Below, one piece after another: positions 2,980 through 48,137 of a DNA stretch of 64,000 nt; position 1 is the first letter of the stretch, and the number at the start of each line of letters is the position of its first letter. Location: the NCBI RefSeq assembly GCF_006345805.1, contig NC_043002.1, forward strand, positions 83,824,001 to 83,888,000. The letters are read 5' to 3'. The notes beneath the pieces are model-generated. The model made no database searches. It was given only the letters and a program-made list of their open reading frames with translations, and was not told where the DNA came from. The DNA is from Octopus sinensis (lineage: Eukaryota). The position numbers and the translations under genes were made by a program.

Positions 2980-3028
2980 GTACGTAATTGAAATTTTTCC
3001 GGTTTTATAAATTATATAACAAATATAT

Positions 3029-22705: not shown

Positions 22706-22713
22706 TTTTCATT

Positions 22714-23225: not shown

Positions 23226-24479
23226 CATGCGCGTGTGTGTGTATGTATGTGTGTGTGTGTGCGAGGGGGTGCTGAAAAGTTCCTGACTTTAAGGGGCGAA
23301 AGACCTGGTTATAGGCCTTAACCATCAGAGTTCTTTTACAGAGCATAGAGAAACTGAAGGACCACTGCAATAAGTGTGTGAATCTGAGAGGCGAATATGA
23401 AGAATAAAATTATAATTAATTGATCCTCCTGTATTTTTTTAACCCAAAGCTAGGAACGGTGTGTGCTCAACGGACTTGCACACGGTTTCCATCAACAAAA
23501 TTCTCTTTAAAAGCATTACTTGGCCAGAGGCTATAGTTGGAGACACTTGCCCAAGGTGCTGCGCAGTGGAACTGAATCCGAAACCACGTCGTTGGAAAGG
23601 GAGCTGCTTAACCACCCAACCATGGATTAAAGATATGTTGAATACAATGTGCTATTATTTCCCATTGCAGTGGGACAATTGAAGAGCAAATGATATCCAC
23701 ATCTACTACTACTTATTTATCCAAATTCACTATAGCGTAAATTTGAATAAAGAAGTTGAGGAAGGAGGTACCAAATACCATTTGCAAAATTTAAATTAAT
23801 AAATTAATTATAATGACTCTCTTTAGATGAGAAAGGAAATTTGAACCTTGTACAAGTTTCTGGCAACGCTCAGAGAAAAGGGGAGACAATTTCAAAGCGT
23901 CAAGAATTACTCTCACGAAATTTATTTACATGCTTAGAGGAAAGAAAGTATGATTTTAGCTTGCCCGTAAGGGATAAACATGAACATGTTTCAGTCTATT
24001 AGCTCTCATCAACATAATATAAGTTTAACTAAGTCGGCGTAATTAGATAGTGAAGATCTTTATACAGAAGGAGAGTTGCCCAAAGACCAGACAGATTAAT
24101 ACATCACCTGGTCTTTGTGTGCCTGCAGCATAAATTAAGCTGTTGCACGTATTGAAGCCAAGTTTTCTGTTTGGGGATAATTTATTCTCCTCTTCCTACT
24201 AGTCATAGACGTCCGGAAAAATATCATGGGCAGAGCCCTTCCTCATCTAACTAAGCCGTTACAAAATCTTCTCCATCACAGAAAAAGAATTTATTCCACT
24301 TTTAAACTGTTTGGCGTTTGCAGTCTTACAATATAGCTACAGATTTGTACCCAATTTGCACCACAATATACCCATAACATTATCACACAGAGCTGTTCTT
24401 GTGATTTCTACGGCTTTAATGCTCTTTGGAAATGCTTGATGAACAGTCGTGTCTTCATTTTCATAACCCACTATTTCCT

Positions 24480-26980: not shown

Positions 26981-27032
26981 ATGAAGCTCATAGTTGCTCT
27001 GTTACTGTTGTGGTCCTTTGCCTATTCAAATG
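26981..27032 (+). CDS. Gene family copy B, exon 1: signal peptide MKLIVALLLLWSFAYSN(A)
   Basis: ATG in caaacATG context, basic residue plus hydrophobic core plus small residues, strong donor G|gtaagt. Phase 1 matches exon 2. Confidence 0.85.
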
Positions 27033-27964
27033 GTAAGTACATGATGAGCAAAAAAAAAAACTATTAATATCCTTTGTAATAACTAACAATCCTTTGTAAT
27101 AACTTTAAAATACGTGGCAAATGCTGTTCAAAAATTAACATTATGATTATTTTTGTTGCTGTTGAATAACCCCTCGATCAATCCTGTTCCAGCAGCCTTA
27201 TGAAAACCCAGGTTGTCGTCCCACCGATAGGCACCCCATCGATCTTTTGTTCCAATCATATCATAACTCGTACTGTGATGAATCATATAGTATTGTTTTA
27301 TAAAGTCTTCCTGTAAGGCGTTTCGTTTATACCTATAATTGCTTACTTTGTTTTTGTTTTTTTTTATTATTAAAAAAAAATCCAATTCTGTCCACGTTGT
27401 AATCAAGTGAAAACATAAAAATGTATTTCCATCAAAAGCCAAAGGAATTTCTTGTTTCGTCCATTCTTTTCCTATTGCACATGGGATTTTTTCGCGTTTG
27501 CTCCTTATGTGACACATGTAAAATATTACCTAGTGGCCGAAAGGAACAGGGAAGTCAATGATCAGCTGCATAACACCAGCAAGACATCCAGTACTGGACA
27601 GGCTTAAATAAACTATTGCACTCTACAGTTTTTTACTTAGCAACAGCATTTGTGTATGTGCGTATACGTACGTACGTGAGTGAGTGCGTGCGTGTATGCG
27701 TGTGAATGCATGTGTGTTGTGTGGTGTGTGGGTGACGGTAAAGTCCCACATATGTAATATAGTGAAATTAACTTTAAACTGGTTTGTCTTCAAATGCTGA
27801 GATGTAACTTCAAAGTTCACTGCCTCTTCAAAGTCGTAATCACGATAACATTATCAGCAAAGCCCCTTTGTTGAAACTAGGTCTTTCGATTCAGTGAAGT
27901 AACTTAACTTCTTATTTTCTTCCTAACACTTCTTTAACTAAAGTAGATCTAGTATTGTAAAGTA

Positions 27965-28486
27965 CCGTAAATCCTCGAGTATAATCCGCACTTTTTTCAC
28001 AAAATTTAATGGTCAAAATCCCTAGAGCGTACTATATACGAGGTTAAAAATGAAAATTATTTTCTAAGCAATGTCCTAGTCTCTATTTGCTGTCCGGCAA
28101 TGTTTATTCAGATGCATTTTGTGATGTCGGACGCGAAAATACCTTAAGCTAAGCCTGAAAGCAATGAAGTCATAAAAAAATTATCCATAACTTGCAGTAA
28201 GCAACATTTATTACAATAAAAGTATTCAGAACACAGAATAACATGTAGCAAAAACAATTTGCAAACATATTTACATTCCCATATAACAGTCAAGAACATC
28301 ACCATTATTGTATTACGCATGCGCGGAAGTGTTTGTTCGACTAGGTGCTGCTGGCTTTATTACGCACGGCTCAAGTTAGAGAAGGGGTAGGTATCATACA
28401 CAAGGTTTAGATTTTTCAGCAGTAAAGCCCCCTAAAAATCCCCTGCGTGTTATACTCAAAGGCGGACTATACTCGAAGATTTACGG
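27965..28486. mobile_element. pogo/Tigger-like MITE in intron 1
   Basis: TA|ccgtaaatcctcgagtata ... tatactcgaagatttacgg|TA. Confidence 0.9.
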
Positions 28487-28944
28487 TATGTCTTTATTTT
28501 TGACTGCTTTATTTTATTTATATGTTGCTTAGTCAAAGACACGAAGTGTTAAGACAGAAGAAATGGTAGATGAAGATGTACATAGAGACAGCAGCAAATA
28601 TTGTGAGGATGACGAAGACAACGAACCATAGCTCAGAAAACGTACATTCTTGTTACATAAATATCCATCGATAATGACATTTCGTGTAATAACCCTCTCA
28701 ATTTCCTCCTTTGCCCTTGTTTTCCTCGCAAGTATCAACTTGTAGCTGTTTTAGTTGTCCATTAACTAAATCGATCTCAACAGTTCCTTTGAATGAGAAG
28801 CTGCAAAGGCTATTGGAGAAGTCTTTTGGTGTGGACACCAAACCTTTCAAAAAAGAAAGAAATTCCTCCCGAGGTCGAATTCATCACTCATTGCTCTAGG
28901 CTTGACTCAATAGCTATCAAAAAATATTCGGTTCAGAAAATATT

Positions 28945-29465
28945 CGCCGGGTGAAATGCGTAGCCGTATTTCGTCTGCCGTTACCTTCTGAGTTCAAATT
29001 CCGCCGAGGTCGACTTTGCCTTTCATCCTGTCGGGGTCGATAAATTGAGTACCAGTTACACACTAGGGTCGATATAATCGACTTAATCCGTTTGTCTGTC
29101 CTTGTTTGTCTCCTCTGAGTTTAGCCCCTTGTGGGTAGTAAAGAAATAGGTATTTCGTTTGCTTCTACGTTCTGAGTTCAAATTCCGCCGAGGTCGACTT
29201 TGACTTTCATCCTTTCGGGGTCGATTAAATAAGTACCAGTTACGCACTGGGGTCGATATAATCGACTTAATCTGTTTGTCTGTCCTTGTTTGTCCTCTCT
29301 GTGTTTAGCCCCTTGTGGGTAGTAAAGAAATAGGTATTTCGTCTGCCGTTACGTTCTGAGTTCAAATTCCGCCGAGGTCGACTTTGCTTTTTATCCTTTC
29401 GGGTCAATTAAATAAGTATCAGTTGCGTACTGGGGTCGATTTAATCGACTGGCCCCCTCCCTCAA
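28945..29465 (+). repeat. Head-to-tail tandem array of SINE-A units, period 184 bp
   Basis: gtatttcgt recurs at 28966, 29150 and 29334. Confidence 0.92.
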
Positions 29466-30025
29466 AATTTCGGGCTTTGTGCCTAGAGTAGTAAACAATA
29501 TTCGGTCCGGAATGTGACAAGCTGACAGAACTATCACTGCGTAGCAACATTTCGTCAGAGCCCAAATGTTGCCGAGGTCGACTTTGCGTTTCATCCATCG
29601 GAGTCGATAAAATATATACCAGTTGAGCACTTGGGTCCATGTAATCGACAAACCACACCTCACAAAAATTCAGGCCTTGCGTTTTTAGTAGAAAGGATTA
29701 TTTTAACAATATAGGACAGTGAGCCAGCAAAATCGTTAACATGCCGGACTAAATGCTTAACGTAATTTCTTTCGGCTTTATGTTCTAGGTTCAAGTTCCA
29801 CCGATGTTGACTTTGCCCTTCATCCTTTCAGGTTCGATAAAATAAGTACAAATTGAGCACTTAATTCGATGTAATCGAATATCTCCTCCTATCACAATTA
29901 CTGGCCTTGTGCCAAAAATTAAAAGTATTATTTTAACATGGTTCAGCCAAACGAATATATCCATTTACATAGTTTTAATAAACATACGTTATTAAATAAA
30001 ACATTCTCTTGCTCCTTTCATACAG

Positions 30026-30204
30026 CTTCGTCTGCAGGTCTCAGCACAACTGGTGCTGTGGTTGCCCTGGCTCGTAGAATGATACAATCGTCAAAAACAG
30101 AAGATGTAGAGGACATGGCCATACTTCCTTACCACTGTGACTTGGCAGCTAGTTATGGACAGCTTAATAATGAAACCATAAAAAATATGGACAGAAATTT
30201 ACTG
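30026..30204 (+). CDS. Gene family copy B, exon 2 (ASSAGLSTTG...LPYHCDL...KNMDRNLL)
   Basis: catacag| acceptor and CTG|gtaagc donor, 179 nt. Phase 1 in and phase 0 out join exons 1 and 3 in frame. Confidence 0.88.
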
Positions 30205-30269
30205 GTAAGCGTCTTTTATCTCATTATGATATTGATTTGTCCTTTTTAATGTTGTTGATAATATATAAA

Positions 30270-30990
30270 GCGGCGAGCTGGCAGAATCGTTACTGCGCTG
30301 GGCAAAAATGCTTAGCGGCATTTCATCCGTCTCTGAACGTTCTTAGTTCAAATTCCGCCGAGGTCGACTCTGCCTTTCATTCTTTTGGGGGTCGATGAAA
30401 AAAGTTCTAGTTGAGGAGTGGGGTCGATGTAAACGATTTACCCCCTCCCCCGAAATTGCTGGCCATATGCCAAAATTTGAAAACGATATTGTGATTAATA
30501 AATGTAAATGGAACGATGAAGGCAGCGAGCTGGCAGAATCGTTTGCGTGCTGAACAGAATGCTTAACGGAATTTTTTTCTGGCACTTTACCTTCAGAGTA
30601 CAAAACCCGCTGAACTCAACTTCATCATTCAACCCTTCAGAGGTCGATAAAATAAAGTACTAGTTAAGTACTGGATGTAATAGGCTTGTCCCCTCCCTTC
30701 AAAATTGCCCACTTTGAACCCTGCAATGAATCAGTGTCCCATTAAAGAGGGAATGTTGTGATCTCGGTTACTTATATGCCCTGGAAACCGGGTAGCCGGC
30801 CCTATGACTCCTAGCATTCAAGAAAAATTAAAATTATTAAAAATATTGAGCGATGAATTCGCAGAATCGTTAAAGAGTTGGACAAAATACTCATAACACT
30901 TTAGGTTCGAAGCTCAAACCCCGCAAAGGTCAACTTTGTCTTTCATCCTTTTGGCTTCGATGAAATAAAATACGTGTCAAGGATTAGGGG
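30270..30990 (+). mobile_element. Three further degenerate SINE-A copies just downstream of exon 2
   Basis: gcgagctggcagaatcgtt heads at about 30273 and 30525, gcagaatcgtt at about 30861. Confidence 0.8.
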
Positions 30991-31799
30991 CGATTTATAT
31001 GACTATACCTTTCTTCTCTAAAAGTATAGTGTTATCCATCGTGAAAATTCAAAAATGTCTGAAGCATATAGAAAGCGCCCTTAATACTAGAACTGCAAAA
31101 CTGGGTGAGTTTAATATGGCAAATATTCAATTTGAAATATTGAAAGTAAGTATTTAGAGAAGAGAACTGAATCGGTTGATTACGAAGGGACTGAGTAACA
31201 GAGAGATGTTGGTCAGAGATGGTGGAGTAGAGGAAAGAATAAAAGCAAGCCCATTAAAAGGACCTAGAGGTAGGCGGTCATGAGTCTTCCATTCAGAGGA
31301 ACAAATTTCATTGTTGTATAGTTACTGGGGCATAAAGGAGTAAACATTGCAGTATAGTGAGCCAGTGGTTGAACTATCGTTCATTAAAGTTTTGTCTCTA
31401 AGTGATGTAGACGAGGTAGGGAGAAAGTGAGCTGTTGTAGTCAAACGCAAAAACCCTGTGGTCTGAATTGTACTCTGATGTAAGCGCAAAGAATTCGTTG
31501 TTGCACGGATCTTAACTATCTCGTGTCTCTAAAGAAGGATCAATGATTTCGTGATATAATCTTGATTGCGTACGTGAGAATCGATAGAGTGCCGAACAAG
31601 CTAGCAATTTGATAGTTTGTATCCAGTCACCACCACTTCGTTGTGTGGCCAACTTAATTAACTTTCATTTGGCCAAGTTTACATGCCTGTAAAGTTAGAA
31701 TATCTCCTCTAGGTAATCAGCTGTATCAGTGTAAATTTTAAATTGTTTTATAGGTTACGAGTGTTATATTTTAAGGTTCTTTCCTTGGTGAAACGGGAT

Positions 31800-32060
31800 G
31801 TCCAAGCTCCGCTGCTCATCATGCTGAGAAAAACAAACTCTCAAGTTATCGGTCGCTCTCCGACAGGTTTATAGTCGAGCCTGTGGCTGTTGAGACCTCC
31901 GGTGTTCTTGGTTCTCGGATCATATCCCTGTTCACTCACCGCTACCGGGGCGGAATTTGCTGTCCACTATTGCGAGCCCCGTGAGTCAGAGTGGTTGTTC
32001 CAGCGCATCTTCCTTGACATCCTGGGCAACGCCTTTTCCATTTTGTCGGTTTGTGCCATG
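31800..32060 (+). mobile_element. CRE-like non-LTR retrotransposon C-terminal (restriction-like endonuclease) fragment
   Basis: Conceptual AAAHHAEKNKLSSY...PVAVETSGVLG...EPRESEWLFQRI...GNAFSIL. Confidence 0.7.
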
Positions 32061-32179
32061 AGAAATGTTTCTTTATTGTGAGAAGCGAGATCCAAAATGG
32101 CGTTCCACTTTATGTATGGTGCCATCATCAATGGCGGAATGTGGCCGTCCAGGAATAGGAGTAGCTTCCACGGATGTCC

Positions 32180-32790
32180 GACCACATTTGAACTGGCGAT
32201 GCCTGAGCTTGACTACGTTGTATAACGGTGCATCGTCATCATAAACTTCTTTCACTTCGTCGATAGTCTCTTTTGGTGCACGACCTTTCAGGTATAAGAA
32301 CCTGATCACGGACTTGCATTCAACTGCCTCCATTATAACACCTTAGTCCATCTTAGCAGCAGCCGTAAAAGACATACGAATACTAGTGGAGAGCTGCGAT
32401 TTACAATGTGACATGTAGACATGTATGATTATAACTAAACATAGACACACGTAGAGGTATACGCATGCGCAAATGAAGACACATACAATAGGAATACAAA
32501 ATACAAAATGGCTGACCGTTAGTAAGGAGAGACACACAGATAAGAAAGAAGAAAGCAAAGGACCACTGATGCAGTCACAGGAGTGTGACGAAAGAACTCT
32601 GGCCGAAATAAAATTAAGATTAATGTAAAAAATTAATAATGCTGAAGCAAAGTAATACCAAATATATAGTGCGTGTGTTTTTATTGGCTAAACTGGTAAA
32701 ATGACCATTCCTAAACACAATAATATTCAAGTTCCGTTTCCTGCAATAATCGGAAGTGGGTCAGGGAAAATCTTTAATGAACACCCCTCG
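32180..32790 (-). mobile_element. mariner 5' fragment (TIR plus HTH), interrupted
   Basis: ORF 32073-32333 (SVIRFLYLKG...FKCGRTSVE...GRP). tacgaggggtgttc-type terminus near 32790 on the minus strand. Confidence 0.75.
32560..32604 (+). ncRNA. Slightly degenerate minimal hammerhead motif
   Basis: GG(A)CCA-CUGAUGCA-GUCAC-AGGAGU-GUGAC-GAAA-GAAC-UC-UGGCC: 5-bp helix II, but A9 is replaced and helix III is one base off a palindrome. Confidence 0.45.
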
Positions 32791-34330
32791 TATATATGTG
32801 TGTGTGTATACAAACATCCATAAATGTATGTATATATCAATATATATGTGTGTGTGAGAGAGAGAATATCTGTATATGTTATGTGTGTGTCCTCCCACCG
32901 CTTGACAACCGGTATTGGATTGTTTACCTCTCCGTAACTTAGTCATTCAGCAAATGAATCCCGATAGAATAAGTTGCCAGATTTAAGAAAAGTCCTGGGG
33001 TCTATTTGTTCGACTAAATCCTTCAAAGCGGTGTCCCAGCATGACCGTCGTCTAGTGACTGAAACAAGTACAAGTTTTAACTTAATCCCAAAATCTGCTG
33101 AATTATACCAATACAAAATTTAAAAAAAGGAAAGGGATAAATGATTTAGTTAAATATATTTTTCTTCTTAAAACGTGAAGGGTTTCTATCAGTCTTCTGT
33201 CGCCACTGATCATCCAAGTTCACGAGATGTGAACAAGTGGCTCTTTAAATGACCACGTATACTCGTTTGAGATATCAAAAAAAAAAACTGAAGAGGTGGC
33301 GGTTGTTAGATATTTAAACACCACGTCTGTTATTGGGGTTGAGGAGTGGGGAGAAAACAATGAAAGCAAAGGGCAGTTGAATGCATGAGAAACTTAACAA
33401 TAGTCACACAAGTCCAAAGTTTGAAAACATGATTTCCTCACACACTAAAAAGACAATGAACCAAGATATAAGAGAATTAATTATTTTATACATCAAACTG
33501 ACACTAATTAGGCCAATGATGGAAGATTCTTTTCCTTTATTTGTTTGTCATTGAACAGCGGCCATGCTGGAACACCATATGCAATGGTTTAGTCCAGCCA
33601 TGGGCAAACAGTGGCTCGTGGGACTTTCTCAGTAGCACGCCCAACGAAAATTACCTCGAAAATTTTTTGTTGTGCGGCTCGCCTGATGATGAGCCATGTC
33701 TCATGCAGCTCGCCAGTCGAGAAAGAATGCCCATGCCCGGTTTGTTCATCAAAATTTACTCCACCTCCCAGTACTGTGCTTATTCTACCAATCTCTTTTT
33801 TCTTATCGTTAAGAAGACACTTGCTCGAGGTGCCATGCAGTAGGTTTCGAAGCGAACTTCTTAATTGTACAGCCACACCGCCAACACCTCCAGGATTTAT
33901 AAAATTTGATTTTCAAGAGTTGTAGGGTGATTGCGTCAGTGACTAGACGACATAGACGCGACGAAACTTTTATACACACTTCGTAGTTGACAGCACTACA
34001 AGGATAATAAATGAAAACAGTGTAACAACATTTGTGTGATCTGAAATGGTTAAAATGATTCTTTCACGATGTAATTATTTCTACAATTATTCAGCTACAA
34101 TGGAATAAGGACGGTGGAGTGCCAGAATCGTTAGAAAAAAATCATTTCGCAGTATTTCTTTCGACTTTTTACGTTCCAAGTTCAAATCCCGCTGAGGTTC
34201 AACTTTACCCTTCATTCTTCCTGAGTTGATAAAATAAAGTACCAGTTCTGTACTTGGGTCGATAGTGTCGACTGACTACTGCTCTCAGAATTGTTCGCCC
34301 TTGTATATAGATTATATAACGGATGTTTAC

Positions 34331-34427
34331 CACATTATTTACATTATTGACATTTGACGGATATTTGTCCACGGGCATATGGCGTGGACTAACCCCAAGA
34401 TTCCGAGTTCGATTCCAGGCAGTGACC

Positions 34428-34472
<45 letters not shown>

Positions 34473-35017
34473 GCCCTGATGCAGTACCAGGCAGTGGCTT
34501 CTGATCTTAACTGATTGGAAGTGTTATCATGTACATTGTTTTGTCTTGGTATAAAAAATGGGCTACCGCAAATATTCTGCTCCATACCACAGATTTGCTT
34601 GTCAGTTGTTTGACCTTAACCAGTTGAGCATGTCCCTTAGTGGCTGACAATATGTGCATCTCTGATCACGAGCAGAAGTAGTGGGGGAGCATCATAGCCA
34701 TGTGTTGAGAGGAATTCTTTGGGGTTTGAATAATTCACCTCTGGAAACATGGGTGTTTCGTTCAACATCCTTAAACAACCCTTATTCAGGGACCTTTTGA
34801 GTGGGATGGGCTACTCGACCTGAAGAAAATTCTAACTGGGCCCCACCTGCAAGGTCATGCGCTGTCTATCTTGATATAAGATCACCATGTCGCGCACATA
34901 TGGTTGTGATGCATGTGCCTGGTGTACCCTTATCAGACGGGTAGTCATGATGGGTATACTGGGCTTCGTATATTTTACCCCAGTGTCACTTTGATGGCAT
35001 GCACTGCTCCCTCACTC

Positions 35018-35067
<50 letters not shown>

Positions 35068-35255
35068 CAACAACATCGAAAAATACCTTAGAAATGAGAA
35101 CTTAGGTTCGAAATTTTCCCAAGACACCTGATGAAGGCTGGTGGGTATATCAGACGAAACGTTGTGTTAACAACAAACAAGATGAGGACAAATATCCGTC
35201 GAATGTAAATAATGTAAATAAGGTACATAATTCCTCATCTCTTAAATATAGAACT
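34331..35255 (+). mobile_element. Composite element: inverted Penelope-type end, tRNA-like head, (AAT)n, unique body, (AAT)n, Penelope-type terminus with hammerhead
   Basis: TSD-like ggatgtttac (34321-34330) and ggatatttac (35256-35265). B box gagttcgattcc near 34405. The body recurs at 53085-53400. Confidence 0.8.
35123..35168 (+). ncRNA. Minimal type I hammerhead ribozyme motif (Penelope-type)
   Basis: GACAC-CUGAUGA-A-GGCUG-(10 nt)-CAGAC-GAAA-CG-UU-GUGUU, with one mismatch in helix II. Confidence 0.7.
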
Positions 35256-36177
35256 GGATATTTACTAAACTGCAAATGTGTTTTACGAAGTAATTTCAGG
35301 AAAATGTTTGCTGTATTACTAAGATGTCATAGAAAACCCGAGATAGCGAAACTTTGGGGCTTATATACAAACGTTGGTACATGAACATTATCATCATGTT
35401 CGTGTTGTTATTGTTGTTTTGCCCCGAGTTGTTCCTGACTAGACACATCCATGATCGAAGAAATCCAAAATATGACCAGCTCGTCTATTTTTTCCCTTTT
35501 ATTTATTTATTTATTTATTTATTTATTTTTCAGGAATAGTGTAACCTAGGAAACGTTATCTATGTCCTTACTTAAAAGAAGTCAGTTGCAGTTTGAAAGA
35601 AATTTAGTTGCTCTCTCTTGCAATTCAAGCCGGCACGTCATGTAGACGTTTCCTCATTGGCTAGTTTTGATAGATGTACAATAAATCATCTTCCTCTTCC
35701 GAGAGAATTAAGGGAGATTATTACATCTCCATTGTTTTTGGTTTTTGTTTTTTTTTTTTTGTTTTTTTAACTACGGATACTATTCATTAGTTACATCTGA
35801 CAGAATTATCGTTTTCCGTGACGGAGTGGGATTTGAGCTCAAAATGCACAGAGCCAGAGTAGTTACCGCTAGGCATCCTAACCGACTTTCTCACAACTCC
35901 GTTAATCCACTACCCCCGGAGTGGTACCTTCTTTTTTTCTTTTTCATTGTTCTAATTGTGCTCCGAAAGGATGAAAGATAATGTTGACCTCAGCGGGATT
36001 TGAACTCACAGTAGTAAGAGTCGGAGCAAATAACGTGTTTCTATACAACACCTCTCCCGACTCTGGTTATGGCGGAAAAGTAACAGACTTGCTAACCTTT
36101 ATCTTCTTTTATAATTATTATTATTATTATTATTATTATTGTTGTTGTTGTTGTTGTTATTGTTGTTGTTGTTGTTG

Positions 36178-36216
<39 letters not shown>

Positions 36217-36464
36217 TTGTTGTTCCTCTCAGTTTAACTGAGTTTTTGCAGACAGTCAAAAAATTAACCTCTATGTGGACATTTGATCTGTTAGAAATAA
36301 CAACCAAATTTCTCTTACGATCTTAAAAAAGAGGGCGCATTTAACAACTGACGTCTTGATATTTAAAAAGAAAGTAGTGATCATAACCGGAATTATTATT
36401 ATCAGAAGATCAATGTATTAGATCAGGTTTGGTCAGGAAATTAACATAAAAATAAACAAATATA

Positions 36465-36872
36465 GGCGCAGGAGTGGCTGTGTGGTAAGTAGCTTGCTAA
36501 CCAACCACATGGTTCCGGGTTCAGTCCCACTGCGTGGCATCTTGGGCAAGTGTCTTCTGCTATAGCCCCGGGCCGACCAATGCCTTCTGAGTGGATTTGG
36601 TCGACGGAAACTGAAAGAAGCCTGTCGTATATATGTATATATATGTATATGTGTGTATGTGTTTGTGTGTCTGTGTTTGTCCCCCTAGCATTGCTTGACA
36701 ACCGATGCTGGTGTGTTTACGTCCCCGTAACTTAGCGGTTCGGCAAAAGAGACCGATAGAATAAGTACTGGGCTTACAAAAGAATAAGTCCCGGGGTCGA
36801 TTTGCTCGACTAAAGGCGGTGCTCCAGCACGGCCGCAGTCAAATGACTGAAACAAGTAAAAGAGTTAAAGAG
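36465..36872 (+). mobile_element. Full-length SINE family B
   Basis: ggcgcaggagtggctgtgtggt (A box), gggttcagtccc (B box), central TA/TG microsatellite, aagag-type tail. Further copies at 36920-37560, 48880-49310 and 54110-54370. Confidence 0.92.
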
Positions 36873-37011
36873 TAAATAGACAAGAACAAAGAACCAACTT
36901 TTATTGATTTAGCTCTACTGCGTGGCACCCTTGAGCAAGTGGCTTTTACGAATTAATTATAGTCTTGAGTCGACGGAAGCTTTGTGAGTGAATTTGGTTG
37001 ACGGAAACCAG

Positions 37012-37052
<41 letters not shown>

Positions 37053-37279
37053 CGCGTTGTGCGTGTGTGTGTGTGTGTGCATGTGTGTGCGCGTAGGTAT
37101 ATCTATGTATATACGTGTGTATCTGTGTGTATGTATACAGCTATATATATGTATATATATATGTATATATATATATATATGTATGAATATATATGTATAT
37201 ATATATATGTATATGCATATCTATGTATATACGTATGTATGTATATATATATCTATATATATATATGCATGTATACATG

Positions 37280-37352
<73 letters not shown>

Positions 37353-37658
37353 CCTGTTTGTATGTGTATGTCTATGTGTTTGTTCCCAACCACCGCTTGA
37401 CAACTGGTGTTGGTTTGTTTACGTACCTGTAACTTAGCGGTTCAGCAAAACAAACCAACAGATAAGAACAAAGCTTTAAAAAAAAAGTCCTGGAGTCGAT
37501 TTGACTAACCCTTCAAGGCGGTGCCCCGGGATAGTCGCAGTCTTAAAACTAGAACCAATAAATGATGAAAGATAAAACATAAAAAGATGATATTGAGATT
37601 TATTGATACATAACCATTGGTAACCTCTGTTTTTGTCTTAACTGTCTCTATTCTACAG

Positions 37659-37859
37659 ATCGCCATAGCTGGACTCAACAAACGCATAGTAGCTGTGAGA
37701 AGAAACTTGGGCAACACTATAATTACTTTCAGAGATTACGTCTCTCTCTTGAATCAAAATGTCCTTCTGGTTCCTGACAATTCCACTGAAATTTTCAGAG
37801 AGAAATTCTTAGGCTATGAAGACTACCGTCTAGCTACCACTGACAAGCAGGAAGAAGTT
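37659..37859 (+). CDS. Gene family copy B, exon 3 (IAIAGLNKRI...DKQEEV)
   Basis: ctacag| acceptor and |gtaagt donor, 201 nt. Homologous to 2779-2979. Confidence 0.94.
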
Positions 37860-38169
37860 GTAAGTCTTCTCATAACTTAAAAGCGATCTGCCTATATTTT
37901 TTGCTTCATACTTATGCATACACATATAGAGACACACACACACATATATATATATATATACACACACGCAGGCATGCACGCAAAAAGATACGCACGCACA
38001 CACGTACAGCCATATGCATGCGCGCGCACAGACACACGCACGCACAAACACACACACACGCATACACATACAGGAATATGCACGCACTCACTCACACTCT
38101 CTCACTATGTATGTATGTCTCTTCAAACAGGATTGGCATAAATGTCTCTTCACATCTGACATCGATATG

Positions 38170-38790
38170 AAACTTGAACAATTCAAATTTGTAATGCAAG
38201 CTATATACTACATATCAGCTCCGGGGAGAAAGGCCACTGTGCACAAGAACAGAATTCCCTGGGGAAGGAAAGTTCTAATGAGACAATGTACAAAGATTGC
38301 AAAAGCACCTAATCAAACGATTCAAAAGCAATTAAAGATCCCGCCTGAAAATAACTACAGGAGATTGAGAAAAATCTGCAACCCTCCCCCCAAAAAGAAA
38401 GAGCAGACAAAGAAACATGGATTATGGGCGATAAAATCAAATCCTAAAGCCTTCTTCAAATTTGTCACAGAAACTGCTTCGGTGTAATGCAGGGTAGGAC
38501 CACTCTTCCAAAAGACAACTCCCTCACAGGAAACCTTACGAGTAATGAAATATTCAAAATCATTTTGACATCCTCCACTTCTAGAGTTCATGCAAGTGAG
38601 CAAACCAGCTGAGTTCTTTGTCACTATACCCACAAAAGGGAGGCACTGGAGTTTGCTTACATAGACAAAAAAGATGTCATACTGGCATTAGATGAGAAAA
38701 GCCTGAATTCAGTTACTGGCCCTGATGGATTCCCAACAAGCCTTCTAAAATCATGCAAATGAGCTGTAGCAAAGCCACCGCTGTCTCTCT
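38170..38790 (+). mobile_element. CR1/L2-like LINE fragment
   Basis: AIKSNPKAFFKF...CRVGPL and ...NSVTGPDGFPTSLLKSC motifs. Confidence 0.75.
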
Positions 38791-39651
38791 TCTAGGGAGA
38801 AGATAAAAATAAAAGAAAGTTGGAATTAAAAGGAAGCGCCAATCCAGCTCCGTGTTGTGTATACGTCTGTCTGTTAGTCGAGCTTATGAAATTGTCGGAA
38901 GTCAGCTAGTGTGTAGAAGCTTGGCGGCCTGTGTACAAGGTTTAGAGAAGGATGCAAAGGAAGATGGTAGCTGAAGTTATTCTAATTAGTGAAGGGAAAA
39001 TAAAGAGGTGGCAGAAGAAGTAATCATGTGACTAATTAACAGTTAATAATCACGCAGATAGATAAATATATTGAATAAGGTCTTGAGAACATAAACGTGT
39101 ATATTTATAAGGTATGAATAGAAAGAATGCAATGGGTAAAGTTTAAGAATTAGAGGTCCCCACCAAAGCAGGTGCGCAAAATGTAGTACGTACGTAGATC
39201 TAACTCAGGTAGAATATTTCGATCTATGACGCAAAAAATAAAGAATCGATAGCAGCAAAAAGCTATAGCCTCCCTTTTTGGCGGTTCAGAAGACAGTGTG
39301 AACTTCATCTGAAGATCTCGATGGATCGATCCTTTGCTACAGTTAATGCATGAAGTTCTACCATTCTGATTGGACCTTTTCGTTTTGCTAATGGACCAGG
39401 TAACATTGTAATGGGTGTTATACTATTCCTAAGATGGTGCAGGTAATTAGTTTGTGACTATTAGTTGTTTTGAGCTTTTACTTCAAGCTAAGCTGATACC
39501 ATTTAGTACCCTCTGTCACTTACTTGACGCTTCAAATTTGCCTTTAGGTTGTTAAAATGTAAATAAACCACCATATATATATATTATATATATATATATA
39601 TATATACATACACACACACGCACACACACACACACACACACACAACACACA

Positions 39652-39682
<31 letters not shown>

Positions 39683-40900
39683 CTAGCAATGCATCCCGGC
39701 GTTGCTCGGGTGTTATGACATACAGCCATATTGTATTATTTGTTCCTTTCTTATGGGCAGAATCAACACAGCTGATATATAGTGAACTGGATTACTGACG
39801 TAATGGAAGTAATTGTTTGTTTGAAAGTGAAGTGGGGGAGGGGTACAATTTACATGGGTCTGCATGAAAGTGCTTTAAGAAGGAACACAAACTATGCATT
39901 GTTTCAATGTATAAAAGGGGGTTAATACGATTTTGCCCAGAAATAACGTTTTCAAAATTTTAGTTTTACTCGTACCCACTGCAATTTCTTAATTTGTAAC
40001 TTTTTTTACGATTTTTTTTATCTATGTAGAAAAATACAGAGATCACGAATCTGAGAAATATTTTTTCTTCCAAAGTTTAATTTTTCTTAAAGAAACTTTC
40101 AATGCCCCTTCCCCCACCTCACACACCCATCACCTACCCGCTTTCGAAAACTAAAAACACCTAGTGTTTCACTTTCGTCTGATGTTTCTCGCATGCGTAG
40201 AATTGCACTGAAATAGCAGATGTAAAAAATATTAGAGCACCACCAGAAAACTCCGTATGCTAGAAACAACAGGTAAACGACATTATTTCTGAAGAAATTT
40301 CCCCGCTTTCCAAAAAGCTAAAAATGAAACATTCGGAGTTTGTAGCTTTTTGAAAGTGGTGAGGTGATGGGTGGGTGTCTGGGAAGGAGATTTTAGAAGA
40401 AAATTCTTAAAGATTTCTCCATGGATTACTAAGAAAAATATTCGAAAAAAGTTTTAAAAATTAAGAAATTGGAATGGGGAAGGGGAAGATTAAAATATTG
40501 AGAACGTGTTTTAGGGCGAAATACTTATCTCCTGTATTAAAAACATAGGAATAGGAAGAAATTTAGGAAAAAAATCAGGTGGTGGGAGAAAATTTCACCT
40601 CGGACATGCTAGAAACAACAGGTAAAGGACAGGATTTCTGGGAGAACTTCCTTTTAAATTTGTATCGAAGATCAGGCTTTTAAACACGCTCATCATAAAC
40701 ACGAATTACAGAATAGAAAAAGTTGATTTCAGTTGGATTTGAGCTGTAATTTTTCGAGTGCACATAACAAGAAATAACATAATTCATACAGAAGTTTTAC
40801 CTAGAGTGTGTGTGTATGTCCGTGCGTGCGTGCGTGCGTGCGTGCGTGTGTATGTATGAGTGTGCGTACGTGCGTGCGTGCGTGCGTGTGTGTGTGTGTA

Positions 40901-40933
<33 letters not shown>

Positions 40934-40958
40934 ACCAAAGGAAGTTATTTTATAGCAT
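39683..40958 (-). mobile_element. Non-autonomous Helitron
   Basis: The minus strand ends cccgagcaacgccggg (hairpin) atgcattgCTAG. 5' boundary approximate. Confidence 0.65.
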
Positions 40959-41730
40959 TCCTTCGTTTGAAGTTGTCAACTCGATCATATGGTCGACCAT
41001 ATGTGATCATATGATAGTTCGTTAATTTCCGTAAGAAAATTATTTCCTTATGCTTTGAAGAGAGCAGAAATTGAAAGGGATGAGAAAGTGAAAAGGCGAC
41101 ATTTGCTTTCAAGTGAGAGCAGAAAGTGAAAGATATATGTACGTATAAAATATATATGTACGTGTAAAAGATATATGTACGTGAAAAAAGAGAAGCAAAA
41201 GTAAAAGAAATATGTACGTGTAAAATATAGAACAGTATTATCTAATCGGTACGGAGCCGAAATTAGACCTCAATGGAGACATACAGAGAAACTCCATCAG
41301 AAACTTGCCGGTCTTTCAAACGATCTAACCTTCTTGTGTAGATGTAGAGACTCAAAGCTAATACCCCTGGCTTATTTGTTCTCATCTTGACACCAGTTGA
41401 TTCAAAAAAGCTCGAAGAGTAGCGGAAAGGGCAAGGCACGTCCTCGTCCGTGAGAGGATCCATTATAACCGTTGGAAAATCATCAACTAAATAACGAAAT
41501 CAAAGACAGGTTATCTTCATTAACTGGGAGAATAATCAGAGATGTTGAAAGAAAAAGAATCCAATGTAAATAATGTATAGAACTCCTCATCTCTAAAATA
41601 TAGAACATATGTACATGTATATGAAATGGACGTGTGTGTGAATGTGTGCGTATGTGTGAAAGAGAAAGAGTGAGTGAGTGAAGGTGTATGTTGTCATGTA
41701 TGTATCTTTTGCATCTATGTGTAAGTGGCA

Positions 41731-41768
<38 letters not shown>

Positions 41769-42248
41769 TTATCTTTCATATACACGTACATAAACACATA
41801 TGCATACATCTTTTTTGTATGCTTGTGTGCGAAAATGTGAGTGACTGTATTCCCCCGTAACATATAGAGAAATGGATGTCTTTTAAGGTACACACTCATA
41901 TAGAAAATGTGACGTCCTCGTCATGGTATAAAATGTCGTTTAGGATAGTTGAATTATATAAAGATAATAATGTTAAATTTTTGGAATGCAAATTTATAAA
42001 TGAAAATAAAGTTCATTTGTTAGCCGAAAGATTACTGAATCTTTTGATACCCCATACGTCAAAATCGGCAACTCAGTTTTCGAATGTATTCGCTAATTTC
42101 TGTAAGAACTTTTTAATTTTTTTATGCTTTCAAGAGTGCAGAAATTGAAAGAGAAGAGAAAGTAAAACCGCAACATTTGCTTTGAAGTGAGGGCAGAAAG
42201 TGAAAGATGTATGTATGTGCATATGAAATGGACGTGTGTGTGTGTGTG

Positions 42249-42289
<41 letters not shown>

Positions 42290-42737
42290 CATGTACTAGA
42301 GAGAGAAGGAAAGAGAGAGTGAATGAGTGAAGGTGTGTGTTGTCATGTATGAGTGGCATTCACTCGGTCTCTCTATATCTCCCACACACATATCTTTCGT
42401 ATACACATACATAAATACATATGCATACATCTTTTTTGTATATATGTGTGCGTGCGCGAGTGCATGTGAGAGAATGAGAGAGACTGTATTTCCTCTTAAC
42501 ATACAGAGAAATGGATGTCATTTAAGGTACACACAGAAAATGTGACGTCGTCGTCGTTGAATTGTGGTATAAAATTTTTACGATAGTTGACTTATAGCAA
42601 AGATTATAATGTAAAATTTTTGTAATGCAAATATGTAAATGAAAATAAAGTTTATTTGCAGTTCTATATTTAAGAGATGAGGAATTATGTACATTATTTA
42701 CATTCCACGGATATTTGTTCTCATCTTGTTTGTTGTT

Positions 42738-42783
42738 AACACAACGTTTCGGCTGATATGCCCTCCAGCCTTCTTCAGGTGTC
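42738..42783 (-). ncRNA. Minimal type I hammerhead ribozyme motif
   Basis: Minus strand GACAC-CUGAAGA-A-GGCUG-(10 nt)-CAGCC-GAAA-CG-UU-GUGUU. Confidence 0.75.
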
Positions 42784-43152
42784 TTGGTGAAATTTACTTC
42801 GCAGACGAACATCGCAAAGCTGTGACACAAGGAGGTATTGATAAATCGGGTATAGCTGATCATGTATGGAAGAATGGAGACCACCTCCTCCTGTGGGATG
42901 AAGTTAAAACAATAGATAGAGAACACCACTGAAAAATACGAGTACTAAAAGAAGCAGCACATATGCTAGGACACAACAACCTCCTAAGCAGACCGAGTGC
43001 AGATATGAGTAGCATATGGGAACCGATATTAAGGAAGGATAGAAAAATATTAAATTTATAAGCCCTAAAATTTACTCCATAAATGCCCACGGGCATATGG
43101 CGTAGTGGTTAAGAGCGCGGGCTACTAACCCCAAGGTTCGAAATTTTCCCAA

Positions 43153-43198
43153 GACACCTGAAGAAGGCTGGCAGGTATATCAGCCGAAACGTTGTGTT
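43153..43198 (+). ncRNA. Minimal type I hammerhead ribozyme motif
   Basis: GACAC-CUGAAGA-A-GGCUG-GCAGGUAUAU-CAGCC-GAAA-CG-UU-GUGUU, with intact core and helices. Confidence 0.78.
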
Positions 43199-43834
43199 GA
43201 TGAACACAAATATCCGTCGAATGTAAATAATGTAAATAAAGTTTATTTGGCAGACGTAAGATTACTGAGTCTTTTCATACCCCATACGTCAAAATGGCAA
43301 CTCAGTTTTCGAACGCATAAGGAAGATACACACACACACACATATACAAACTCTCTTTTATGTATATGGAAGTGTCCCTGTCTGTCTCTCACATTCCCTG
43401 TGTGTCTATCTCTTTCTGTCTCCTCCCCTTCACTGATATCAGCCACCTTCATTATGCCATATTTTCCTGAGCCAAACACTTTTGCACTCCTCTCATTTTA
43501 TCATGTAATAGCCCAACCTCCATAGTCGGTCAATTATCGATTTTTATTGAAATCCAATCAGTCTATACTTGAGCTGGATGTTAATTCAACATATATACAA
43601 AGTTTGGTGAAGATTGGTTCTCTGGTTTGGGCACCAGGATAATAACAGACAGACGGAAATTGCCATTTATATATAAGATGTATGTATTATGAATATGTAT
43701 GCATGTATGTCGCCACTGATATAGGAAGAAAGTGATTGAAAACTTACTGTTGTTGCAATTAGCCGGTCGGCAGAATAAAAATATATTATATATGAATATA
43801 AACACACTTAATTATGTATGCTACTCTCTTACAG

Positions 43835-44056
43835 GTAGAAGAAGTTACTAACTGGTTTACAAATGAACTTATTAATGACCCAGACGTATTAGCTGACACG
43901 AAGATCGAAATTGTTGACTATGCAAATATCGTAGCAGCTACTGGCGCAAAGATCAAAGGCTTTCGTACTCTTATTCTCCGAAATCATTACGTTGAACGCA
44001 GTGTCGTTGATATGGGTGTCCTTCGTTACCCTGATTTAAATAAGCCCTACTTCAAG
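43835..44056 (+). CDS. Gene family copy B, exon 4 (VEEVTNWFTN...RYPDLNKPYFK)
   Basis: ttacag| acceptor and AAG|gtaata donor, 222 nt. Homologous to 4584-4805. Confidence 0.95.
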
Positions 44057-44277
44057 GTAATATTTAAAACCACAAATACTCCCCCATTTTATTTATTAAT
44101 TTTAAAATTTTATTTACTCATTCTTATTTTTTATTTTTCATGGAAAGTGCCAAATTTCATACCTCATAGTACTTAAGATTCGTTGATCCGGGTTCTGATT
44201 ACAAATCTCAACTAGTTGGAGATAACTTTACATTTTATTCTATCTATTTCTCTCTCTCTCCCTCTCTCCCTCTCCCT

Positions 44278-44319
<42 letters not shown>

Positions 44320-45561
44320 AGAGATAGAGACATGATGATCACGATTTTTAAATCCACCATACTCATCAATTCTTGTCAGACACAAAGAATTAGTTTAATG
44401 TTTGATTTTTATATCTTCTATTACTCATTTGTCTGTATCACTCTCTTAACTCCTCTCAACAATCAAAATCTATAACATTCAGTAACTTACTCTTTATGCG
44501 AAGAAAGACTGTCTGCGAAGGATGAGAAAAGATGTTGCTAAAAAATTGTCGGAAGCCGCTGGAAAATCAAGTCACAACATCTTACTCAAAAGAGTTGAGT
44601 GGTGCAGCACGAACAAGCAATGAGGATAGTAGAAACATCTGACTCAAAGGTGCGGTATTTGACTCATCAAAGCACGAGCTACTATGCGGGAGTTTTGTTG
44701 CTTATATTAGTAGACGGTCATGGTCCGAAACACCTAGAGCTGTTTCACCGCCTGATGAGACACTGATCAATGCATTCGGAAACGGAGTAAAGCAGCACGC
44801 TCAGCACACAAGTGTGGTATTGATAGTTTCAATTTTTGCAGATCTTAAGCCAGTTCGTGTTGATGCTTTAAATACGATGTCTTGAGTTCGACCCCACTAG
44901 CATATTGGATAGATATCATTTTCCTGAATCGGCCCATATTTTGTGACTGAAATTGGCTAGAATTAACATTTATAGAAGTCAGTCAGTTGGATTGTATCCG
45001 TAATTCATCGGTACACCCTTGTTACACACTGTGTTACACTGATTCTACTAACAAATTACGCTATGGGTACATATGTCTGAAGAAGGTTCAGGCGCTAACA
45101 CTTCAATTCAATGAACAGGTAGTTCAGTTGATCAAACAATTGATTCCTCGTCAACGACAGAGATACATCCATCAACTTATTTACAGTACACACATGCACG
45201 GAAACCCTTTTATTCTATAAATGCATTGAATACTTGCCCTCAACAAAACATACTCTATGTAGCACTCTCATTCAAAAGAAAGAAAATCAATAAGCCACTT
45301 CCTGCATATTCTGATCATTAACCTTTATCAATTGATTAGAATTTCTGAAACACACGCTAATTTGCCAAGGAAACAGAAGTAGTTATCATCTGATTCCATC
45401 AATATTACCTATGAACTGTGACTTCTTCCAAACATTGAAGAACATGCTATTGGTTTTTAAACAATGATCAGCGCTCTAGCCAACTACATAATTAAAAGAT
45501 GTCTCCATTCCATACCAAACCAAGAAATTCTGCCACTGTTCATTGTGGTTTCTTGCAAAAC

Positions 45562-45873
45562 TTATTCTATGAATCTGCCTTCAGCTTCGTAGACTGATTC
45601 AATGTGAGACAAGAATCGTTGACGTGCTTGCACTAAATGGTCCTCCTTCATTTCGGACACCACCTGTACAATGGCGGCCTTCAGTGAAGCTATGGTATTA
45701 TGAAGATGTCGGTTAGTCTTTCTTTCAACAACGCTCCAAACGTAGTTCATATGACTTAAATTTGACGAGTTTGGTGTTACATGATCGTAAAGATTATCTA
45801 GCATCTGTTTTTTAGTTACGTGGGCTCTGGTGAGACGGTGCTGAATTTTGTCGAAACACATATGACCTTCCAC
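45562..45873 (-). mobile_element. Tc1/mariner maT-like transposase C-terminal fragment
   Basis: YVWSVVERKTN...NTIASLKAAI...EAEGRFIE*. Confidence 0.8.
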
Positions 45874-47948
45874 TGTGCATTCGAAATATCTATTCGTCGA
45901 AACGGTGCTCGTCTAATGTGAAGAGTGGACATTACACATGGATGGCACTTGTATGTAGAAAGTCAGAGAAGCGTGATGGATGATATCATCCTTCTAGAAG
46001 TGTATGTAGTTAGATACTAGTAATGGCATTAATGTGAGAAGGAAACGCTGGGAATACGTAATCTCTGACAGGTACAAGAGTATCAACGTACTGTATATTA
46101 GTTAAAATACAGACGAAGAGAATTTATATCGTAGTGATTCGATTTGGATAGAAGATTCAGATGAAAGAAATGGGAAACTGAGCTTATCGACGAAAAACTT
46201 TGCTAATAAATTCTTGTGTCAGATAAAAAAAAATGAAATTAAACATTGGGAAATGTATACTTAGATATACTATGTCAGAAAATTGAAGATTTGATTGCCA
46301 TGGATGGCATGTCTTTAATCATATAGGTTTGTAGGCTCATAACCTTCTTGGAAATAAACAGGAAGAACATGAGATTCAAAAGTATTTAACGCACTCACTT
46401 ATCTAAAGACGTTAAACCCATACTCCTTATTTAAGAAAACTTTGAATTAGAAACAAAATCATTTTATTCTGGCTATCAAAATTATCAGAAATTACCTCCG
46501 CGGTAAAGTTCACACCCTCAACAAAGATAAAATTACATTGATGAGCTCAAATTTTGTTTCCAGCTCATGAAAAATTATTGAACATACTTTAATCACCTTT
46601 ATCTACTGATCTTTTACAATGCTTCTTACAAACTTCTAAGAGTTTATCATAATTTGGACTGTTGTACATGTCAAAGTCGTCATGATGTCTGGTAGTTATA
46701 CATTACAGGATGTTTTACTTGGTGTAGATAAACTATATAAAGCGTCACTCTGAGTGATTAACATGAAGTCGCTTGCCAAAAACTGATAGGCACCGACGCA
46801 CAAATATGCTGTACTATTTTATTTTATCTGTCTTTTGCTACTGCTGCTGTTGCTGTTACTGTTGAGCGAACGGTCTTCGTCCCAGAGCTCACAAGATGGG
46901 AGAAGTCCGAAACGTAGTCCTTTGCTATTCGTAATACCCGCAGAAGAGAAAGCAGGTCAACCCCCGACACCGAGAGCATCGACGGATGGATGAATGCGCA
47001 TCCAAGCTCAGCGGTTGCGTAGGAAGTCGGGGACAAGAAGCAGGAAGAAAGAGTGGGAGAAAGTTGGGGCGAAAGAGTACAACAGGGGTCGCCGGAGCCT
47101 CATGGAGCTTTAGGTGTTTTCGCTCAATAAACACACACAACGCCCGGTCTGGGAATCGAAACCGCAATCCTCCGACCGCGAGTCCGCTGCCCTAACCTTT
47201 GGGCCATTGCGCCTACACGTTTTTGCTGCTGCTAATGCAATAGCTTCTACTTCTCAGAACTGGCTGGTCACATGTCATTTACATTCACTCACTTTCGATA
47301 TACTCGTCTCTATTCTTCTCCGTAACCCGTATTATGTGTCCATTAACAATTACTCACACTCCTTCCTATTCAGAACCTCAGCTCTCTGGTATTCCTTCTT
47401 AGCCTATATTTTTCCTGCAGCAGTCGACTCATACTGTTGAAGAAGAACATTAATCGCGTCATGGGTTTGTGGGGCTATGTAAGGCCATAAATACAACCTC
47501 TTCCTTCAATCTCTCAGTAGAATTTTATCTTTTCCTGCTTCATTTTTCTATCGATGTTACATGATCACTGGACGTTAAAAGACCATAGGTTGGAACTATC
47601 CAAATTTTGAGAGGCTATTTTTTATGACTGAGATAGAGGAGAGGAGCAATGCTCAAGCCCTTTTTTAATTTGTTAGGGCTTCCGAAACTGGTGGGAGGGA
47701 AGGAGAAAAATATCCTCAAACCGGAGACCTGATCTGAAGGCTTACAACAGAGTGGGACTCTGCTAAAAATACTCAAGGGTCAGAATATGGTATTAAACTG
47801 GACGACGGATTAAATTCCATGTCCCATTGTTTAATTTTGGTCGTTTGACAAAATATTTTCAAAAACTAAATCTTTCATGTTGTTTTCCCAAGAATTTTTA
47901 TCAATATTTTACATTTCATTAAAAGTTTTTTTTAATTATTTCTTGCAG

Positions 47949-48137
47949 TTATTCCGTATCCAGTTGTTTGCTTACAGACAATCTAAGGCAGTGTTATTTA
48001 TGCAAAAGGATACAAGCGGAATCAGAGGACAGTATCAATCAATGGTTTTCGTACCTAATGAAGCAGTTATTGCGAAATTAAAACAAGCAACCAAAATTAG
48101 AGCAGCAAACGAAGCTTTAGAAATGTTTAATGAATAA
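47949..48137 (+). CDS. Gene family copy B, terminal exon 5 (LFRIQLFAYR...LEMFNE*)
   Basis: ttgcag| acceptor, 189 nt, TAA at 48135-48137. The spliced CDS is 52+179+201+222+189 = 843 nt, or 280 aa. Confidence 0.95.
   Translation, partial: LFRIQLFAYRQSKAVLFMQKDTSGIRGQYQSMVFVPNEAVIAKLKQATKIRAANEALEMFNE

Follow-up and report, generated by a model that had tools for sequence, protein, structure and literature searches.

The five-exon gene at the locus

The subject of this report is a five-exon gene in a 64,000-nucleotide (nt) stretch of the Octopus sinensis genome (NC_043002.1, positions 83,824,001 to 83,888,000, forward strand; the whole stretch is referred to here as the window). Its product, a protein of 280 amino acids (aa), is annotated at NCBI under LOC115213439 and labelled just "uncharacterized protein". 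An earlier reading made from the letters of the window alone (the sequence-only reading) had joined the same five exons at GT-AG junctions with phases 1,0,0,0, and had put the product forward as a candidate pore-forming toxin similar to the Bacillus Cyt toxins and volvatoxin A2. This gene model held, since the peptide segments quoted for it were all found on the plus strand by six-frame matching and the 280-aa translation was equal letter for letter. The exons are as follows.

Exon 1, 26981-27032, + strand: 52 nt; ATG plus 17 1/3 codons, approximately the signal peptide MKLIVALLLLWSFAYSNA; donor GT, phase-1 intron.
Exon 2, 30026-30204, + strand: 179 nt; N-terminal segment of low confidence (residues 19-52), first conserved strand, LA[AP]S[YF]G motif, Cys55 and sequon N66.
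Exon 3, 37659-37859, + strand: 201 nt; first helix pair (74-94, 101-110), strand region 114-132 and sequon N118.
Exon 4, 43835-44056, + strand: 222 nt; second helix layer (142-190), first long strand (193-208) and the motif G-V-L-R-Y-P-D-x3-P-Y-F-K, the most conserved in the family.
Exon 5, 47949-48137, + strand: 189 nt; long amphipathic strands 217-233 and 236-254, C-terminal helix 264-277, stop codon TAA at 48135-48137.

The spliced coding sequence measures 843 nt, and its product is 100% identical to the NCBI model, which is placed at CM016864.1:83,850,981-83,872,137 of GCA_006345805.1. All introns run from GT to AG with a pyrimidine tract, and their phases are 1,0,0,0. Genes of secreted proteins typically have such a signal-peptide exon with a phase-1 intron behind it. 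In O. bimaculoides, the ortholog LOC106875293 codes for a protein of 85% identity and has five exons of the same sizes as here, with GT-AG sites. No transcript contig coding for exactly the O. sinensis protein was found in the contig index, where the genome record was the sole entry. With 13 peptides of a gland proteome identifying the O. vulgaris ortholog (280 aa, 31.748 kDa), the model is more than a chance chain of open reading frames (ORFs), and LOC115213439 is confirmed as a real and complete five-exon gene. The annotation of the gene and the observation of the protein by mass spectrometry were already known; the family, its breadth, its probable fold and its link with the venom gland are new.

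The introns are rich in microsatellites and repeats, including a 184-bp tandem repeat at 28966-29450. From first to last exon, the gene covers 21.2 kb in O. sinensis as against 10.8 kb in O. bimaculoides, the difference being intronic.

The precursor has a calculated mass of 31,749 Da (31.75 kDa). Its N-terminus is hydrophobic and signal-like, and cleavage after A18, as predicted by the -3/-1 rule and not by SignalP, would leave a mature chain of 262 aa and 29.7 kDa with a pI of 6.75. The protein has a single cysteine, C55, and two sequons, N66 (NET) and N118 (NST), besides a third, N17, within the signal peptide; judged from these motifs, it is probably N-glycosylated. Outside the signal peptide there was no segment of transmembrane strength, no 19-residue hydrophobic window exceeding 0.93. 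Each of these features as given by the sequence-only reading (signal peptide, one cysteine, the sequons NET and NST, an RR pair near the N-terminus, no transmembrane helix) was recovered in the translated product. A role of the RR pair as a proteolytic activation site was not sustained: R34-R35 is RK in O. bimaculoides and is not dibasic in the paralogs, and no conserved activation site was evident in this comparison.

An unnamed family, its presence in the venom gland and its rate of evolution

Profile searches place the protein in a large and unnamed eukaryotic family with a patchy distribution. In iterated searches, the members were retrieved at profile E-values of 1e-133 to 1e-18, and an exhaustive search with the family hidden Markov model (HMM) collected 614 clusters (50% identity) at E<=1e-3, 177 of them at E<=1e-30. 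Within the window itself, tblastn and the family HMM located three copies, all in the same orientation. The protein is no oddity of cephalopods but one member of a large eukaryotic family, and its gene sits in a tandem paralog array; the sequence-only reading missed both points.

Octopod members were observed in O. sinensis, O. bimaculoides, O. vulgaris and Argonauta hians, in at least seven paralog groups, and a further mollusc, the chiton Liolophura sinensis, has a member in LOC135476491. The family extends to many fungi (Mortierellomycetes, Agaricomycetes, Sordariomycetes, Orbiliomycetes and others), the green alga Acetabularia, brown algae (Ectocarpus, Choristocarpus), a chrysophyte, the fern Ceratopteris, Selaginella and the amoebozoan Mastigamoeba; among the named matches, none from squid, cuttlefish, gastropods or bivalves surfaced. 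In a neighbour-joining tree, which carries no support values, the octopod sequences formed one clade adjoining the chiton and fern sequences. Signal peptides are present in the octopod and Acetabularia members and missing from most fungal ones.

A structure search of BFVD gave two viral homologs, M1I283 (367 aa; E 5e-23, 30% identity, template modelling (TM) score 0.74) and M1HBT0 (371 aa; E 5e-11, TM 0.56), which may bear on how the family spread. From their accession series, we presume that both belong to chloroviruses. Scans with exact short motifs, which have limited sensitivity and which divergent members can escape, gave no bacterial or archaeal member in GTDB (one genome per species) and no relative in the IMG/VR viral contigs, leaving the viral homolog without a contig.

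The hallmark of the family is the motif G-V-L-R-Y-P-D-x3-P-[YF]-F-K-[LV]-[FY]-R-I, located at the hairpin that joins the first two long strands, and exon 4 is the best exon match of the family HMM (7e-34). Among 131 sequences, P210 is invariant, R208 is conserved at 96%, and the charged residues D73, D159, D161, D203, R208, D211, K218 and R221 are near-invariant. The O. sinensis protein retains 29 of the 34 positions that are at least 75% conserved. Two members carry additional domains: the Mastigamoeba balamuthi protein (468 aa) has a C-terminal ricin-B lectin fusion, and a metagenomic protein (322 aa) has an N-terminal LDLa (LDL-receptor class A) domain. Both architectures are typical of targeted effectors, and lectin or targeting fusions are known from several lectin-guided pore formers. 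Weak matches to EF-hand, DUF4062 and similar domains in a few members were rejected as noise.

The O. vulgaris ortholog is proteinGroup 255 of a shotgun proteome of the posterior salivary gland (Almeida et al. 2020, PMC7693380, Tables S1 and S5). This group is TRINITY_DN11676_c0_g1_i1, a 280-aa ORF of the gland transcriptome (Table S5), and its best match is XP_014778869.1, the O. bimaculoides ortholog of our gene, at 84.3% identity and 99.6% coverage. It was identified by 13 peptides (10 unique) with 49.3% coverage and a mass of 31.748 kDa (Table S1); its intensity of 1.03e10 and intensity-based absolute quantification (iBAQ) value of 8.6e8 are at or above those of the neighbouring displayed entries. 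Since 31.748 kDa compares with 31,749 Da calculated for O. sinensis, the proteins of the two species are essentially the same. Two paralogs were detected separately in the O. vulgaris gland, as groups 701 and 725/726. ProteinGroup 255 also takes in SRR680047_c85_g78 and SRR3105558_c552_g640 (both 280 aa) and SRR725937_c12_g27, which come from other cephalopod gland transcriptomes, so that further species, too, transcribe orthologs in their venom glands. TRINITY_DN11676_c0_g1_i1 is missing from Table S3, which lists the proteins that Fingerhut et al. 2018 had not seen, and from this we infer that the latter study also detected the O. vulgaris ortholog.

A signal peptide together with detection in the venom gland, the latter by way of the O. 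vulgaris ortholog, places the protein in the octopod venom or posterior-salivary-gland secretome. The venom role guessed at by the sequence-only reading has thereby found an ortholog in the gland proteome to stand on, whereas its pore-forming part is a prediction that we take up below. The ortholog does not figure in the venom-family tables of PMC7693380, where it was left unclassified. Identifiers of these genes (LOC, XP, UniProt) were not mentioned in the main texts of the literature searched, and the supplements of the octopus skin-mucus proteome, the blue-ringed octopus genome and the Paroctopus gland transcriptome do not list the genes; no literature tying Cyt or volvatoxin to octopus or other cephalopods was found.

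The rate of change of the gene was determined between O. sinensis and O. bimaculoides. Nonsynonymous divergence (dN) was 0.078 and synonymous divergence (dS) 0.088, giving a dN/dS of 0.89. The 42 replacements shun the positions conserved in the family (3/66 vs 37/202, Fisher p=0.005), and none falls within residues 192-228. This means that a constrained core is accompanied by a fast-evolving rest, as in many effector genes. Paralog expansion, the presence of a pseudogene and a dN/dS of 0.89 with conserved positions spared fit an arms-race-like evolution of an effector.

Predicted fold and possible action on membranes

An AlphaFold2 model of the protein was built on a 57-sequence alignment, an earlier run on 7 sequences having been discarded (predicted local distance difference test, pLDDT, of 45). 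The model has a pLDDT of 78.8 and a predicted TM score (pTM) of 0.72; past residue 60 the core is mostly above 85, with dips at 131-140 (56), 171-200 (53-74) and 231-240 (70). Its elements are the strands 53-60, 114-132, 193-208, 217-233 and 236-254 and the helices 74-94, 101-110, 142-157, 160-179 and 264-277. This predicted order along the chain, beta-alpha-alpha-beta-alpha-alpha-beta-beta-beta-alpha, is the published order of the cytolysin fold, and in this respect the sequence-only reading is supported. In cytolysins, a sheet is flanked by the hairpins aA/aB and aC/aD and ends in three long C-terminal strands and a C-terminal helix (PMC5390079; PMC7052140), and the domain predicted here would likewise be a sheet of long amphipathic strands between two helix hairpins.

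The three long C-terminal strands are predicted to measure 16, 17 and 19 residues, a length that would be able to span a bilayer, and their hydrophobic/polar conservation alternates across the 131 homologs. The hairpin registers are backed by coevolution: a mean-field direct coupling analysis (DCA), underpowered at an effective number of sequences (Neff) of 167, returned the b5-b6 and b6-b7 hairpins, a b3-b7 coupling and a coupling of both helix pairs to the b5-b7 sheet, with D161-K218 among the higher coevolving pairs; it was too noisy to settle the order of the sheet. The viral homolog M1I283, which was predicted independently, superposes on our model with its TM of 0.74 and so lends independent support to the predicted fold of the family.

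On searching the PDB with Foldseek, ranks 1 to 8 were taken exclusively by Cyt1Aa protoxin (6T14, 6T1A, 6T1C), activated Cyt1Aa (3RON), volvatoxin A2 (1PP0), Cyt2Aa (1CBY) and Cyt2Ba (2RCI), at E-values of 2e-4 to 3e-3 and probabilities of 0.87-0.99, and no other match reached a high probability. The next tier consisted of START, PYL and norcoclaurine-synthase helix-grip proteins, with probabilities and TM-scores both <=0.21, and an assignment to the START/Bet v 1 fold was rejected on these values.

Several observations weigh against a Cyt-like toxin. The geometry of the matches is poor: superposition on Cyt and volvatoxin structures gave TM-scores of 0.24-0.30 by query (TMq) and 0.29-0.37 by target (TMt) and root mean square deviations of 10-17 A, which lie under the usual range for a shared fold. 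Evf and Dickeya CytC are missing from the Foldseek top 50. In the viral library, an RNA-phage maturation protein that is surely unrelated scored an E-value of 9.5e-4, so that the Foldseek E-values alone are weak. Similarity to Cyt or volvatoxin could not be detected by sequence: the protein matched no Pfam family at E<=10 (hmmscan), the 57 homologs gave no consistent Pfam match, with PF01338 reached at E<=1 in 0/57, and no PDB sequence matched the protein, the 57-sequence family profile or the C-terminal 94 residues, no Cyt chain being returned at E<=10. The many near-invariant charged residues, which pore formers do not usually have, could belong to a ligand site or a catalytic site, and most of the fungal members do without a signal peptide. 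A dN/dS near 1 could also reflect relaxed constraint. Finally, what PMC7693380 reports is the proteome of a tissue rather than of milked saliva, and the protein was not counted as venom-like by its authors.

Taking these findings together, we regard the cytolysin-type fold as the probable fold of the family, on the strength of the predicted model. The check by AlphaFold and Foldseek that accompanied the sequence-only reading came out favourably in the ranking and poorly in the geometry. The comparison with PF01338 that it also suggested gave no match, either for the protein or for the 57 homologs, and the local resemblances to Cyt1Aa segments that it pointed to carry no statistical weight. Because it shows no membership of the Cyt/volvatoxin sequence family, we do not file the protein there; it may instead belong to a new sequence-orphan clade of the fold superfamily. 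There is a precedent for such a clade in the Erwinia virulence factor Evf (2W3Y), which at a sequence identity of only ~15% shares the cytolysin fold and binds lipid, but which is bacterial, palmitoylated and non-lytic.

The likeness to the Bacillus thuringiensis Cyt1 and Cyt2 toxins (PF01338; 3RON, 6T14, 1CBY, 2RCI), which are among the best Foldseek matches (0.87-0.99), lies in a single alpha/beta domain of similar size with the same predicted order of elements, preceded in both by an N-terminal extension. No sequence similarity is detectable, however, the TM-scores are 0.25-0.37, the octopus strands are longer (16-19 residues), and the strongly conserved charged motif LRYPD...PYFK has no known counterpart in Cyt. 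Whereas the Cyt proteins are bacterial crystal protoxins, the octopus gene is eukaryotic and intron-bearing, and its product has a signal peptide for secretion, can be glycosylated and has no conserved activation site. Volvatoxin A2 of Volvariella volvacea (Foldseek rank 6, 0.93) and CytCo of Conidiobolus obscurus are eukaryotic proteins of the cytolysin fold, and like most fungal members of the new family they have no signal peptide; they are recognisable as members of the Cyt/volvatoxin sequence family, which the new family is not. In its patchy, transfer-like spread, lineage-specific tandem expansions, secretion and use in venom or defence glands, the family recalls the coluporins and conoporins (actinoporin-like) and the biomphalysins (aerolysin-like), which differ in having unrelated folds and demonstrated lytic activity.

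Based on the model, the gland detection and the family comparison, it would be reasonable to hypothesise, with a probability of roughly 0.5, that the gene encodes a secreted venom-gland protein of octopods with a predicted cytolysin-type fold that damages membranes in the manner of the Cyt toxins and volvatoxin A2. For these toxins, a model has been proposed in which the helix layers move off the sheet, which binds, inserts and oligomerises (PMC5390079). By analogy, the octopus protein would be secreted in saliva as a soluble monomer and would bind to lipids in the membranes of prey or microbes; once the helix layers had swung aside, its three long C-terminal strands would insert and oligomerise, leaving the membrane leaky. 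The gene, its splicing, the family, the tandem array and the presence of the ortholog in the gland are demonstrated parts of this account, whereas the fold is predicted, and secretion into saliva, lipid binding and lysis are inferred. The network of D, R and K residues (D159/D161, D203, R208, D211, K218, R221) may be a latch that holds the second helix hairpin on the sheet; it may equally be a ligand site. The interpretation given by the sequence-only reading as a whole thus keeps its complete gene, secreted protein, Foldseek ranking and presence in the gland, but has lost the sequence relationship to Cyt and the RR pair as an activation site.

We also offer a more tentative proposal, which we would not rate as the likelier outcome. 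In it, the family would be a sequence-orphan clade of the cytolysin superfamily whose spread through fungi, algae, early-diverging plants, amoebozoans, molluscs and large DNA viruses was due in part to horizontal transfer, and which octopods expanded in tandem and recruited as a membrane-damaging venom toxin. More speculative still, a 29.7-kDa chain with two N-glycans would come near the ~34-kDa glycoprotein beta-cephalotoxin, known from O. vulgaris salivary glands in literature of the 1970s, the sequence of which is not known to have been determined.

Because the network of charged residues offers a possible ligand site, a non-lytic lipid-binding role is the main rival to membrane damage. The protein would then be a secreted binder of lipids or small molecules, an alpha/beta sandwich with a hydrophobic pocket as in Evf or START/Bet v 1, and would carry or sequester its ligand in saliva or secretory granules. 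We consider this unlikely, with a substantial residual chance. One protein of the cytolysin fold, Evf, does bind palmitate and is non-lytic, and all Cyt proteins have been proposed to share a conserved lipid pocket (PMC5390079); the START, PYL and norcoclaurine-synthase matches of the second tier are helix-grip ligand binders; the invariant polar residues cluster round the b5-b6 hairpin and the aC-aD loop, which suggests a specific binding site; and the cytosolic members of fungi, algae and plants suit a cellular ligand role as well as a toxin role. Nevertheless, the second-tier matches score well under those to Cyt, and the ricin-B and LDLa fusions, the birth and death of paralogs and the dN/dS of 0.89 would sooner be expected of an effector than of a carrier.

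Somewhat less probable still is an unrelated function, as an enzyme, a granule-packaging or matrix protein or an antimicrobial or immune factor, with the likeness to Cyt being convergent or spurious in a generic two-layer alpha/beta sandwich. The top eight PDB matches belong to one fold family and to three divergent subfamilies of it, the order of elements is the same over the whole domain, and no enzyme or other fold scores comparably. In favour of an unrelated function, the TM-scores are low and noise of comparable score occurs in the viral library, sequence searches link the protein to no known family, its invariant D, R and K residues could be catalytic, and PMC7693380 stresses the immune functions of the gland. 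That the gene is non-functional, under relaxed constraint and becoming a pseudogene, or that the model is an annotation artefact is very improbable, for although the dN/dS of 0.89 between the two species and the decayed copy 11 kb downstream would suit such a view, neither the ORF nor any splice site is disrupted in either species, the replacements avoid family-conserved positions (p=0.005) and are absent from residues 192-228, and the ortholog was seen with 13 peptides at high intensity, 10 of them unique, which argues against their origin from a paralog.

Descriptions of octopus venom have mostly dealt with proteases, CAP proteins, chitinases and small molecules. According to a 2026 preprint, the sequence is known for only one cephalopod venom protein of proven paralytic activity. 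A gland protein that is abundant, secreted, fast-evolving and tandemly duplicated, and that proteomics detected without its being classified, thus offers a concrete new candidate for a toxin. If the predicted fold is true, the Cyt/volvatoxin fold would extend from bacteria and a few fungi to animals, and more than 600 clusters of 'hypothetical' proteins outside Pfam, from fungi, algae, plants, protists and a virus, would receive their first functional hypothesis. The patchy distribution and the viral member make the family a good case for studies of eukaryote-to-eukaryote or virus-mediated transfer of effector genes.

Tandem copies and surroundings of the gene

The other family copies in the window, and a transposase remnant near its start, are located as follows.

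2779-5680, + strand: 3' part of the tandem paralog LOC115213512 (288 aa), with exons 3-5 at 2779-2979, 4584-4805 and 5492-5680.
59642-62300, + strand: decayed third copy (pseudogene remnant), with an exon-4-like piece at ~59642-59866 and an exon-5-like piece from 62110.
206-965, - strand: frameshifted remnant of a mariner-type transposase (PF01359 E 5e-15; DDE_3 weak).

Exons 3-5 of LOC115213512 are intact and measure 201, 222 and 189 nt, equal to those of the gene described above; exons 1-2 lie upstream of the window. In the decayed copy, ~11 kb downstream of the gene, the exon-4-like piece has an in-frame stop and reads LCYPH in place of LRYPD, while the exon-5-like piece has lost the normal stop and the conserved P254; no equivalents of exons 1-3 were found in the window by tblastn and the family HMM. 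Four family genes of O. sinensis share one 120-Mb chromosome.

The mariner remnant probably lies inside an intron of LOC115213512. A (TATG)n microsatellite of ~550 bp at 22713-23258 gives rise to several long spurious ORFs on both strands.

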